Assembly (NCBI GenBank): GCA_907165135.1
Contig: OU015568.1
Coordinates: 10,354,001-10,418,000 of the forward strand
DNA: 64,000 nucleotides
Reading direction: 5' to 3'
Source of the DNA: Oikopleura dioica
Lineage: Eukaryota > Animalia > Chordata
The notes below the pieces were generated by a model. It did no database searches. It had not been told where the DNA came from and saw only the letters and a program-made list of their open reading frames with translations. Position numbers and translations under genes: made by a program. Below are positions 3,446 to 43,493 of this stretch, one piece after another (the first letter of the stretch is position 1; each line of letters opens with the position of its first letter).

Positions 3446-4200
3446 ATGAATAATCTTGAATTTGGATCAGAAAATGTCGAAAAGAAGGGTCACCCTGGAG
3501 TTGTCGTGGCCCATCTCGGCTTCCGTATCTCTGCTCTCTTTATTTACATGTTCGGAGGGGTGAGTAAATCCTCAATCGATCCTTTTTTATTGGTGAAATT
3601 AAAGATCTTCTCCATGTCATTTGTAACTTCTTTTGTCTTCATTCTCCTCTGTCTGGCGATGGACTTTTGGACAGTAAAGGTTCGTTGAATTGTTTGAATT
3701 CTTTGCTGATGATTGTTGGTAGAATGTAACTGGAAGATTTCTCGTCGGTCTGAGATGGAGAAACAACATCGATCCAGCGACAGGACAATCCTCCTGGGTC
3801 TACGAATCAAGATCGGAAGAAGGCTTCAAACGAAAGCCAGTTTTGCCGAATGAATTTCGAGCTTTTTGGGGAGCACTCATTCTTTGCCCTCTTCTGTGGG
3901 CACTTTTCGGCCTCAGTGCTCTTTTCACTCTCAAGGTTCGCTTGTTTGGCGATTTTTTCTTATAAAACTTTGATTCTAGTTCCCTTCGTTCATTGTTTGC
4001 TTGACTGGTTTTGGATTCAACAGCGCTAATCTTTACGGATACATTCGATGCAAGATCGGAGGATTTGATGCTGTCAAGAACTACGCCAATAATCTTCTCG
4101 GCAAGCAAATGCTCTCTCGGTAATATCTTGTCGATGCTCTATTTTAAAGGATTTTAGGTTCATGTCTTCCGCTCCTTCAGCACCAGCCCAATCTGCCTAA
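3446..4200 (+). CDS. TVP23: Golgi apparatus membrane protein TVP23/FAM18 homolog
   Basis: Five exons giving HPGVVVAHLGFR...DFWTVKNVTGRFLVGLRW...WVYES...FWGAL...NLYGYIRCK, with canonical 40-50 nt introns. Confidence 0.93.
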
Positions 4201-39563: not shown

Positions 39564-40790
39564 CCGTGGCTCAGGAAACATGCAGTGGAATTGAGACTTA
39601 TAATCAAGATCTAACTGATAATGGCTTTTTACAGAGACTTGGCCAGGGACTAGAGATTGTTTTGTGAGAGTTTAAAAAGTGATTATGAAACCGCTTCAAA
39701 TTGTTTGTAAATGTTATGTTTGAAAACTCTAAACAAGGTTATTGCTGGACGAGGCTACCTCGGCGACGAGAGTAAAGGAAAACCCGCAGTTCCATACTGG
39801 GGCGGAGATTATGGCGAAGAAGGATCCGATCTTTTCCACAACCCCGATGATGTTATTCGACTTGGATGCAAACTCGGCTACCAGAATAGCATCGGAAAGC
39901 CATTCATGGGAACAAAGTGTCTCTGTACTGACGGGGTCTGCCAGTGGACCATGAACAACCCCGACTTTTCTTGCGTCTCCAACGATAATGAAGTCTCCAT
40001 TCCAGTTTGGTCCGGCGGCACCTTCAACTTTATCAAGAGCACCTTCTCTAGGTAAGATAGCCGGAAGAATATACATGGTTTTTATTACCTAGGTATTTGG
40101 TCATGAAAACTCGAGTCTCCAACCTCCGAAACGTCGACAACTGGAGCCACGATCAGATCGACCACGTTGCTCATCCAGAATATCTCACACAACAGTTCTG
40201 GGATGATTCTGAATCGACACTCTTTGTATTCTGGTAGAACATTTCCTTATGTATCCCATAGACACCTATTTTAGTCCTTTTGATGTCACTCTCGGTGGAA
40301 TCAATGGAGGAGACGGCAGAATCGCCTTCGCAGACTGGTATCCATCAGAACAGTCTTCAGATGGAAGGCTTTGGTCTTTCTTGTCTCGAGAGGGAACAAG
40401 AGTGAATAGACAGAAATGCGAGCTTGTCGAAGGAGCCCTTTCTTGCACGACAAAGAGTAGTTATTACAAAGGTAGGAATAAACATTTGTTGTTGGCTATT
40501 TATGAAATTTTAGGATACATTGATTGGTCTGCAGATAATTCTGAACGAGGACCCATCGAAATTCATACAGGATTTACTGCTGGAGGAAACGACTACTCCT
40601 GCGAGACTGGTAATAATCGAAATTCGAGTCCGCGATAACAAACAATATTTTAGGTATTCTTCCTGGACATCATCCGGATGCGATCGCCAAATTGCAGCAA
40701 TATTTCCCAATTTTCGCAGACGGAGATTTCTCAAAGATGGTCAATTATTTAAGAAATCCTCCATTCGATGATACATTCACGTTGAACTAA
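39564..40790 (+). CDS. Cys-containing, probably secreted protein of unknown family (sushi-like module); start unresolved
   Basis: Several phase-compatible exons. The C-K-L-G-Y...C-L-C-T-D-G-V-C-Q-W...S-C segment resembles a sushi/CCP-like fold. Ends ...DDTFTLN*. Confidence 0.6.
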
Positions 40791-40949: not shown

Positions 40950-43493
40950 CTAATCTAAGCTGTATGCAATAGAATACGTCGATGGAAATTCCATCGGCAG
41001 AAGAAACTCGCTAATTTGAACTGTCTTCGTCTTTTCGTCGAAGAAAAATCTCTCGATTTCACTCTCGCCAATGGCATAGATCAGATTATCGTAGTGAGCA
41101 ACAGCAGCATTCGTGTATTTCTTAGAAAAATAATATAATTGTTAAAAAAAATATCCTACTTTTTGAAGATGTCCTAGCTTCGACCAGCTTTTGAGGATTG
41201 AATAAAATGATAAAAAACCAGTGCTACGCAGCTAACCGCGCACGATGCGACAGTTCCCTCCCGAAACGCGGTATTCCAACCCGGTCGCCCGAGGGAAGTA
41301 CTAACCCCGCCCGTCGTAGTTTGACTTCGGAGATCGAGCGGGAACTGGCCCAGCCTGCGCGATCCGCCGCGAAGCGATGATTCACCATTTTTGAGCATAT
41401 ATGAATCAATTTTCAAAAATAATTATTTTGAGAAAATTATTTTTGATTGAAAAACTCATCTGTTACTATATTTATTAACCCAATAGCTTAATTTCCTCAA
41501 TTTGTATTTATAATTTATAAACTTTAAGTTTTTAAAAAATAACGAATCCGTTCCTTGCTTCAGTATTTAGAAGATAAATTGAAGCTGTGTCCTCATTTCC
41601 ACCACCTAGAGTCATCATGCTTCCATCCGGTAAACTGATACAGGTAATACCAATAGTAGGTCTATCATAAAAAATATTTAACTTTTTATGATAATAAAAC
41701 ATACTGGCCGACGAGCATTTGAGTTCCAGAGGACCATGTCGATTCGAAAATTTCAACAAGGGAATTATCCCCAGCTCCAAGTATCCCGCCTCCAAGAGCT
41801 ATTGAAATTTAGTTATTTATAAACTTTTTCCATATTCTTACCGGTAATTTTCCCTAAGAAAAGCCCTAAAGCACCCATAAAGTGTTCAGAAGGAGTGTCA
41901 ACTCCAAGTTCTTCAACTTTTTCACCATTGAATACCTGGCATTTACTCAAATTTGGCCTGGATTCTGCTGAGAAACATAAATAAACTAGAAGAATTGTGA
42001 CTTTAAAATAAAACGAAAATTTTTTACCCTCTGCGAAATCGTTAGTAGTCTGGATTGCCTGAGACTTTTGCTGACTGAGAATGTTCCAAAATCAAATTCA
42101 AATATAAGTTATTAAAAAGGCTCTCGTAAGTATTGAAACCGTTCGTAAAGAGAAGTTTCAAATCAATCTTTTCAATTGTGATTCCCTCTAATTTCGATAT
42201 CTAAAAATTTTCAAAATATAAAATGCTTTTTCAAATAACCTGTCTTCCATCTTCTAGTCCTCCAAATAAGTAGAGTGTATTTTTATAGACAGTACTTCCA
42301 ACATCGACAAGCCGAGTGATCCCATCTTCTGGGTAATTTATTGAACTCAGTGTTGCTTCTCCTGTTGTACTGATTGCAAGTCTTCCGAATTCGTTCATAA
42401 CAAAAAAGCCTTTCATTTGCTTGCTCGAAATTAAGTGTTGGAAGCAGGAAATCATGATTACCTGACAGTTTTGTCCAGCAAATCCAGCTTTGCACTTGCA
42501 CCTGTGTTTTCTGTACTTTTTATCGACAGTGCACTCGCCATAATTCTGACAGGGTTGATCAACACAAGGATTCTTCTCGCAATACTTTCCAAACGCGTAA
42601 TCTGGGCATTTGCACCACTGTTCTCGCTTGTAGACTTTGCATTCTCCGCCATTGTAGCAAGGGTTCACTTTGCAAAGTTCGTACTCGCAGATCTCCCCGT
42701 AGAATTTCGGCTTGCAAGTGCACTCAAATTGGTCTTGCGGTCGATCTGGCACATCTAATTGCGATTCATATGACTGGGAGACTTCACTTTCGCTATTTTC
42801 TTCTACGGTTCCATCTTCATTCGAAACGGGCTCCTCTTCTTCCTCATTCTGTTCCACACCATCCTCCCCAAGAAGATTACATACTCCATCGCTTCGGCAT
42901 GGATTTGGCTCGCAAGCGGATCTCTGATAATAACGCTCGCAAGATTTCTTTTATAAAATTTACCTCGCATAAATCACCATATCTTCCAAGAGGGCAGTCG
43001 CAGGTAAAACCGGGTCTCTTCTCATTGACCACACAGACCCCGCCATTGGTGCAAGGATTCGGGTCGCAATAAGCAATCTATTTTCTCTTGAATTCGTAAA
43101 ATTGATATTATTATTACTGTACCTCGCAATCTAGCCCGTGATGCGAATTCGGGCAGTCACATTCGTACGAGTACGTACTCTCGTCAACATAACACTTTCC
43201 TCCGTTCTTGCATGGATTGTCCTCGCAAGGCGAGAGCTCACAAAATTCACCGGTACTTTCTTCGTTGCAATCGCAGTCTATCACGTACATTGAGATAGTT
43301 TCGTTGACAATAGAACAGACTGCTTCATTTAGACAAGGACTCGGATCGCACGCTATAAACATCACCTTTATTCCGACAAAAAACGTTAACATCTACCAGT
43401 TTTCTTGAACTGCGTTGCCCAAACAGAGGCTAAGACGAACATAAACGCTATAATGCAGCATATTATCGTTCTCTTATTTTTTAAGAGCTCCAT
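40950..43493 (-). CDS. Type II membrane/secreted protein with 6 EGF repeats and Kelch-like beta-propeller repeats
   Basis: N-terminal anchor IICCIIAFMFVLASVWA and six C-x-x-x-P-C-x-N-G-G-x-C EGF units. Then LYLFGG, YLCF...CQVFNG, ALGGG, MTLGGG, WSKLGHLQK and LIYAIG blades. Confidence 0.82.
41256..41375 (-). ncRNA. 5S rRNA-like sequence (divergent 5S variant or 5S-derived Pol III RNA/SINE3-like) inside an intron
   Basis: Minus strand CCAGTTCCCGCTCGATCTCCGAAGTCAAACTACGACGGGCGGGGTTAGTACTTCCCTCGGGCGACCGGGTTGGAATACCGCG aligns colinearly with metazoan 5S positions ~28-108, including the loop E GTTAGTAC/GAATAC and a GNRA tetraloop. First T6 run at 41212-41217. Confidence 0.8.

Follow-up and report, generated by a model that had tools for sequence, protein, structure and literature searches.

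Cassettes that join 5S ribosomal RNA (rRNA) genes to spliced-leader (SL) RNA genes in Oikopleura dioica were reportedly first described by Ganot et al. in 2004. 5S pseudogenes and orphons are also known, for example the truncated copy carried by the Xenopus oocyte 5S repeat, and the Y RNAs and vault RNAs are small RNA polymerase III (Pol III) products with a long stem of their 5' and 3' termini and an oligo-U end. SINE3 elements and the 5S-bearing TRIMs (miniature retrotransposons that have terminal repeats; Cassandra and Ajax) keep the promoter while the rest diverges, and their predicted RNA is not 5S-like (PMC10886601). In O. dioica, 22 of 27 5S copies are in inverted arrangement (Bliznina et al., 2021, PMC8008620). 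Here, a 64-kb stretch of O. dioica DNA (assembly GCA_907165135.1, contig OU015568.1, forward-strand positions 10,354,001 to 10,418,000; referred to below as the window, whose own coordinates are used throughout) was analyzed for a 5S-like element carried on the minus strand within an intron of an EGF/Kelch-like gene.

The element had in common with the O. dioica 5S/SL cassettes the same 5S type, including a 33-nt identical block, a TATA-bearing upstream flank and an inverted-repeat architecture. It differed from them in having no SL gene, in its tail-to-tail and overlapping copies (one cut to 43 nt), and in being heavily substituted, GC-enriched and lower in score (36 versus 75–98 bits). Like the 5S pseudogenes and orphons it appeared to be a DNA-level duplicate unable to make ribosomal 5S, but its substitutions ran 19:3 to GC, spared the promoter and raised the predicted fold stability, and it was retained at an orthologous site. 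Like SINE3 and the TRIMs it kept the promoter, diverged elsewhere and was predicted to give an RNA that is not 5S-like, but it was without retroposition hallmarks, carried gene flank and was a single orthologous copy. The predicted RNA resembled Y and vault RNAs in length (~160 nt), in a terminal stem of both ends and in a 3' U run; this likeness is one of predicted shape only, with no sequence relation and with a promoter of type 1 (5S), not type 2 or 3. The element is a true derivative of a 5S gene palindrome, kept at an orthologous site, and appears to be neither ribosomal 5S, mobile element nor chance resemblance.

Architecture of the 5S-derived palindrome

Canonical 5S genes, used as the yardstick for derived states, were taken from SL-linked 5S on marine metagenome contigs and not from the window's own assembly. 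The 40-nt SL sequence (PMC6883708) was scanned against the metagenome collection, giving 39 loci (5S examples: L042:759-877, L008:915-1033 and L013:281-399; also L040, L029, L014 and L030). Canonical 5S adjoining the SL scored 75–98 bits with the Rfam model, and two damaged copies 46–51 bits. Helix II separated three sequence types, through a G-C to C-G exchange that was compensated; type C stood in tandem arrays and type A in inverted arrangements. Every canonical gene had a TATA box (about -30 to -24) and, immediately after ...GCTAAGCA, a T4 or longer. At L016 a head-to-head 5S pair was present (L016:781-901 and L016:1035-1090), in which the first ~17 nt of one copy were replaced by AT-rich sequence (50.6 bits); this is a further naturally damaged 5S copy adjoining a palindrome. 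On the JGI (Joint Genome Institute) marine contig L040, an HSP20 small heat-shock gene (L040:190-621) lay ~250 nt from the 5S/SL cassette.

When the whole 64-kb window was searched at Rfam gathering thresholds, nothing was reported. Below threshold, the full RF00001 model (1–120) matched 41256-41374 (-) with 36.4 bits, where the gathering score is 38; E was 7.3e-6 for a 601-nt stretch and 7.8e-4 when all families were run on the whole window. The element was single in the window. It was closest to canonical type A, to which positions 1–109 aligned with 23 substitutions and 1 inserted base. The 33-nt block identical to canonical 5S (positions 48–80) covered box A, the intermediate element, the 5' strand of helix V and the start of loop E. 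Because 33 consecutive bases were identical to Oikopleura SL-linked 5S genes, homology of the element to 5S is beyond chance. Chance resemblance to 5S, considered as a candidate in its own right, was rejected on the same run of identical bases.

The element aligned with its own reverse complement over 153 nt. The inverted copy, running from 41223 to 41265 on the plus strand, was 67% alike to the forward arm, and in a three-way comparison with canonical 5S the two arms had 8 derived states in common. Forward positions 1–109 and inverted positions 43–1 were each flanked, so that an inverted 5S gene pair of the O. dioica palindrome kind was present. The forward flank matched the canonical L040 flank in the same register from -38 to -9 (22/30; p < 0.001 versus shuffles), and 2 of 202 AT-rich control segments matched the L040 flank as well as it did. 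BLAST alignments to canonical L040, L042, L008 and L016 ran 38–85 nt upstream of the gene. An upstream TATA-like motif, CATATATG, was found at -28 to -21, and its TATA core was kept in a contig from a second lineage (L045, described below). The forward flank, starting at 41418, aligned locally with the reverse complement of the flank beyond the 3' extension, which reaches 41189 (TTTTGAAAATTGATTC... with TTTTGAGGATTGAAT...). No SL gene remnant was found in the 64-kb window beyond 11-nt chance matches.

Taken as a whole, the element is a 230-nt, decayed, tail-to-tail 5S gene palindrome (41418-41189), that is, a DNA-level derivative in which the forward flank (~43 nt) and positions 1–109 were fused to an inverted 43–1 and its flank. 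Asymmetric central deletion of a fuller palindrome is a plausible route to this arrangement. Only T3 runs were present inside the element, at the normal 5S end too, and a T6 was placed 24 nt before the acceptor AG. The preliminary description of this locus had put the first T6 terminator ~40 nt beyond the normal 5S end, in the intron's pyrimidine tract, and this was confirmed (T6 at 41212-41217). The 40-nt 3' extension turned out to repeat the element's own 5' end in inverted form, a point absent from that description. The T6, the pyrimidine tract and the acceptor all derive from the inverted flank.

These flanks bear directly on whether the element is a 5S-headed retrotransposon, either a SINE3 or the solo long terminal repeat (LTR) of a Cassandra/Ajax-type TRIM. 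A kept promoter with a diverged 5' part is the pattern of SINE3 and Ajax heads (PMC10886601), but because the upstream gene flank (about 40 nt) was copied on both arms, the template was DNA rather than a transcript, and the element was single and orthologous in the second lineage. Neither a LINE-like (long interspersed nuclear element) or A-rich tail nor a target-site duplication was found at the arm ends, and no second copy, primer-binding site or polypurine tract was found in the window. Direct repeats of the element were likewise absent from the window, where its repeat is inverted and not the pair of LTRs of a TRIM. Element-specific DNA patterns gave no match in the metagenome, prokaryote-genome and viral collections. 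A retrotransposon origin was judged very improbable. The earlier suggestion of a SINE3-like element was set aside on the gene promoter flank co-copied on both arms. As candidates, SINE3 and TRIM were both rejected on this co-copied flank.

Comparison with the species' own 5S and with a second lineage

The preliminary description had measured the element against vertebrate 5S, which was misleading: most of its apparent compensatory changes were inherited from the species' own 5S. The C-G to G-C change in helix V was the same as in canonical Oikopleura 5S (6/7 pairs kept), and helix II was mostly unchanged against it, with an intact 3' strand and two changes in the 5' strand giving U.G and C.A; neither counts as compensation. 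Compensation stood only in helix IV, where one double change (A-U to C-G) was element-specific; this double change, two A-to-C changes and one inserted C gave a tighter stem of 9 bp. The canonical Oikopleura gene itself lacks the box C guanines described as lost. The core of box C, GGGNGACCGG, was kept, with its 5' part changed and a shift of 1 nt, and box A and the intermediate element were identical to canonical. Use of vertebrate 5S as comparator in place of the species' own gene therefore creates false compensatory changes.

Helix I was defective, as had been stated, its 3' strand being replaced by inverted, non-homologous sequence. Loop A was changed from CAUA in canonical 5S to CGGA in the element, and 3/6 pairs of helix III were lost (helix III and loop C form the L5 site). 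The idea that structure was selected as a 5S fold was not supported by these three regions. Loop E sequences were unchanged, and the arm of helix V, loop E and helix IV was retained.

If the element were a functioning 5S variant that enters ribosomes, whether orphan or stage-specific, this would account for the full-length Rfam alignment near threshold and for the retention of helix V, loop E and the greater part of helix II. Such a variant fits poorly with the damage to helix I, loop A and helix III, with the lack of a terminator at the 5S end and with scores of 75–98 bits for canonical genes. The 121-nt 5S part alone folded no better than shuffles (z +1.65), and a fold keeping 5S helices II and III cost 36 kcal/mol more than the 35-bp hairpin described below, so that the ribosomal role proposed in the preliminary description is extremely unlikely. 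A functional ribosomal 5S was rejected on helix I, loop A, helix III and the terminator.

Substitutions relative to canonical 5S comprised 19 AT-to-GC and 3 GC-to-AT changes, in a gene that is 50% GC in its canonical form and is surrounded here by an intron of 20% GC. The binomial probability of the 19:3 bias was 4e-4 at 50:50 and 7e-8 at a 30:70 expectation, and that of the 33-nt block without change was 0.0012 by permutation. Base composition formed a sharp GC island (41212-41378; 54–61% GC) within intron sequence of 20–30% GC, in an AT-rich window of 42% GC overall. Transition differences between the arms gave G.U on the minus strand in 5/5 cases and on the plus strand in none (p about 0.03). 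The element was not identical to the standard 5S (23 substitutions in 1–109), and random decay, which the preliminary description had held to be the other way of explaining the element away, is contradicted by the GC bias and the spared block. Judged from these patterns, decay of the element appears not to have been random.

A second lineage was represented by three contigs (L001, L045 and L046) with 83–87% identity to the window; two ENA (European Nucleotide Archive) contigs, L002 and L003, were 96.9% identical to the window and belonged to the same lineage as it. L046 stopped short of the element. An exon fragment led, by way of one of its cluster members, to L045, a 6.6-kb Logan contig from run SRR23998815 that was collinear with window 47909-41299 at 80–85% identity. 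Its listed gene coordinates do not all translate to the listed products; its DNA aligns cleanly to the window. In L045 the GA donor was identical in kind and a single element stood at the same place. Over intron positions 41419-41553 three gaps of 13, 48 and 10 nt (71 nt) were required, and gapless alignment began at 41415, almost exactly at the palindrome start (41418). The forward upstream flank was 85% identical and gapless. Identity was 90.6% over 117 nt for the shared part of the element and 93.5% over 77 nt of 5S-like sequence, the latter lying in the top 12% of 77-column windows (median 83%).

Of the derived states compared, 13 were common to the window and L045, 4 were window-only and 1 was L045-only. 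Lineage-specific changes were AT-to-GC in 4/5 cases, and three window-only changes converted A.G or U.G to C-G in the predicted stem. The 33-nt block was unchanged in L045 as far as the contig reaches; L045 probably stops there because the block is common to multicopy canonical genes. The element predates the split of two lineages about 15% apart.

A predicted hairpin RNA and competing explanations

The minus-strand RNA of 159–169 nt was predicted to fold at -78.2 kcal/mol (z -3.3 to -3.9; 0/300 shuffles as good), and the plus-strand RNA at -55.0 kcal/mol (z -1.0). The predicted fold joins the two terminal 42-nt segments in an imperfect stem of 35 bp (mean pairing probability 0.98), topped by a three-way junction with a small hairpin and the loop E/helix IV arm with its GCGA loop. 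Replacement of the 5' arm by the canonical sequence changed the energy from -78.4 to -58.0 kcal/mol, and replacement by the L045 5' arm gave -74.1 kcal/mol. For the whole intron the energy was -118.7 kcal/mol (z -6.1); the hairpin persisted, was extended by flank pairing, and the intron ends were brought together.

On the reading that we tentatively prefer, at somewhat under even chances, the element is an active Pol III gene for a predicted ~160-nt hairpin RNA. Box A, the intermediate element, the box C core and the TATA-like motif were spared amid heavy GC-biased turnover, and because the internal promoter and TATA-like motif were spared, the element is probably still a Pol III unit, with transcription expected to begin at G 41375. 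Replacement of the helix I 3' strand and the T run left the unit without its normal stop, so that the polymerase would continue along the inverted arm as far as the T6. The expected product is a ~160-nt RNA whose first and last 42 nt pair as the 35-bp imperfect stem, a hairpin that the host pre-mRNA would form as well. The ~165-nt Pol III or intron-borne RNA of the preliminary description survives in this form, as a prediction with some support. A functional reading has a slight edge, given that the promoter block was spared, the TATA-like motif retained, GC gained locally and the fold strand-specific.

Several points weigh against an active hairpin gene. The hairpin follows automatically from the inverted duplication and its existence alone proves nothing; an inverted duplication can mimic a selected RNA fold. 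Binding of TFIIIA is uncertain, since box C is altered outside the core and shifted by 1 nt, and only one copy of the element was seen within the 64-kb window. The G.U asymmetry rests on only 5 sites. Mismatched stem positions (11, 23, 26 and 37) were GC-enriched too, a pattern that a general GC-biased process (biased repair between the arms of the palindrome, for instance) would explain as well as selection for pairing would. The 8 derived states common to both arms could reflect duplication after divergence or arm-to-arm copying. Conservation in L045 was no better than in good exons, the lineages being close (85% overall), and L045 ends inside the 33-nt block, so that the lineage comparison covers the 5' arm and not the 3' arm.

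The element could also be an inert relic. A 5S palindrome may have landed in the intron or helped to form it, lost its centre by asymmetric deletion and survived only as intron filler that gives the pyrimidine tract and acceptor; GC gain and arm similarity would then come from GC-biased mismatch repair or conversion and not from RNA function. Inverted 5S repeats are the rule in O. dioica (22/27 copies; PMC8008620), the element is below the Rfam threshold with helices I and III and loop A broken, and 3/4 of the window-only 5' arm changes move toward the state of the other arm; the GC enrichment at mismatched positions and the exon-like conservation in a close pair of lineages are also as expected. 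Such a relic accounts less readily for a GC bias that is limited to the element, in an intron otherwise at 20% GC, and that hits the unduplicated helix IV too, for a 33-nt promoter block spared in both lineages, and for a strongly strand-specific fold stability, and arms only 67% alike are poor conversion substrates. We regard an inert relic as quite possible, and rank it second to the hairpin gene.

The intron might instead be what the structure serves, with the hairpin folding ~160 nt of an intron unusually long for Oikopleura and so bringing the GA donor and acceptor nearer to each other, or yielding a stable intronic RNA after splicing. The whole-intron fold brings the intron ends together, the element shares the strand of its host, the palindrome includes the acceptor and pyrimidine tract, and the GA donor and element were both kept in the second lineage. 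However, sparing of box A, the intermediate element and the TATA-like motif is left unexplained, and predicted meeting of intron ends is common; an intron-borne structural element was considered improbable.

The fullest version of the hairpin-gene reading is that a new Pol III small RNA gene arose from a 5S palindrome, with the 5S promoter and the loop E/helix IV arm retained and a GC-enriched 35-bp terminal stem in place of the ribosomal fold, that it has been under selection across Oikopleura lineages and that its DNA doubles as the 3' end of a non-canonical intron. This combination is rather unlikely. If it were true, the steps would still be readable: promoter kept, terminator lost and inverted arm recruited as closing stem. 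If the RNA is made and constrained, an rRNA gene would have been turned into another structured Pol III RNA by DNA rearrangement and not by retroposition, and 5S palindromes, a peculiarity of Oikopleura, would be shown to supply splice signals to introns.

Host gene, feature coordinates and neighboring sequence

Features of the element and its intron are collected in Table 1. The position of the 5S-like sequence on the host strand, within a 366-nt GA-AG intron, was upheld by the Rfam match and by the reading frame across the junctions: the GA donor (41553) and AG acceptor (41189-41188) agreed with the frame ...YLLNTEA / S / WSKLGHLQK / KYTNAAVAHYDNLIYAIGES, and a small GT-AG intron followed in the same frame. 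The element occupied the 3' two-thirds of the GA-AG intron.

Table 1. Coordinates of the palindrome, its parts and the host intron in the window
Feature	Position	Strand	Evidence or remark
Host intron, 366 nt, GA...AG	41188..41553	-	Reading frame over junctions; donor kept in L045; EGF/Kelch-like gene
Left arm, upstream flank of forward 5S copy	41376..41418	-	TATA-like CATATATG at 41396-41403 (-28 to -21)
Forward 5S-homologous body, 5S positions 1-109	41266..41375	-	Rfam 36.4 bits and alignment to canonical type A
Block of 33 nt without change from canonical 5S (positions 48-80)	41296..41328	-	Alignments to SL-linked 5S genes
Remodelled helix IV with GCGA tetraloop	41270..41295	-	Box C core GGGCGACCGG kept; 1-nt insertion before core
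3' arm, reverse complement of 5S positions 1-43, pairing with 5' 42 nt	41218..41265	-	Self reverse-complement alignment; three-way comparison
T6, first Pol III terminator-like run	41212..41217	-	Reverse complement of A-run in promoter flank of inverted copy
Upstream flank of inverted copy	41189..41222	+	Minus-strand reading is intron pyrimidine tract and acceptor AG

Host exons were searched one at a time. EGF domains were found in the upstream exons, and the Kelch assignment of the downstream exon came from a motif reading and a weak Pfam Kelch_1 match (E 0.15); of the EGF-Kelch host named in the preliminary description, the EGF part is therefore solid and the Kelch part weak. A search with an EGF exon returned only short contigs. 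A large protein search with a host exon was dominated by multi-EGF proteins and gave, in GCA_907165135.1, only a paralogue. Searches with the element open reading frame (ORF) and the Kelch exon ORF gave no match, nor did exact look-ups of element ORFs and neighboring ORFs.

The public Okinawa assembly annotates the paralogue of the host exon (364 aa, EGF-containing, 41% identity) at L043:10001-12901 (GCA_907165135.1, OU015568.1); nothing 5S-like was found near it. No tRNA was found near the element. At window 3862-3980 (+) a weak Rfam NEAT1_2 match (26.8 bits versus a gathering score of 60; E 0.19) is almost certainly chance. Two long ATG-started ORFs of 114 and 129 aa, both cysteine-containing, were present on the plus strand at 39711-40638, convergent to the end of the EGF/Kelch-like gene, and are probably a separate gene.

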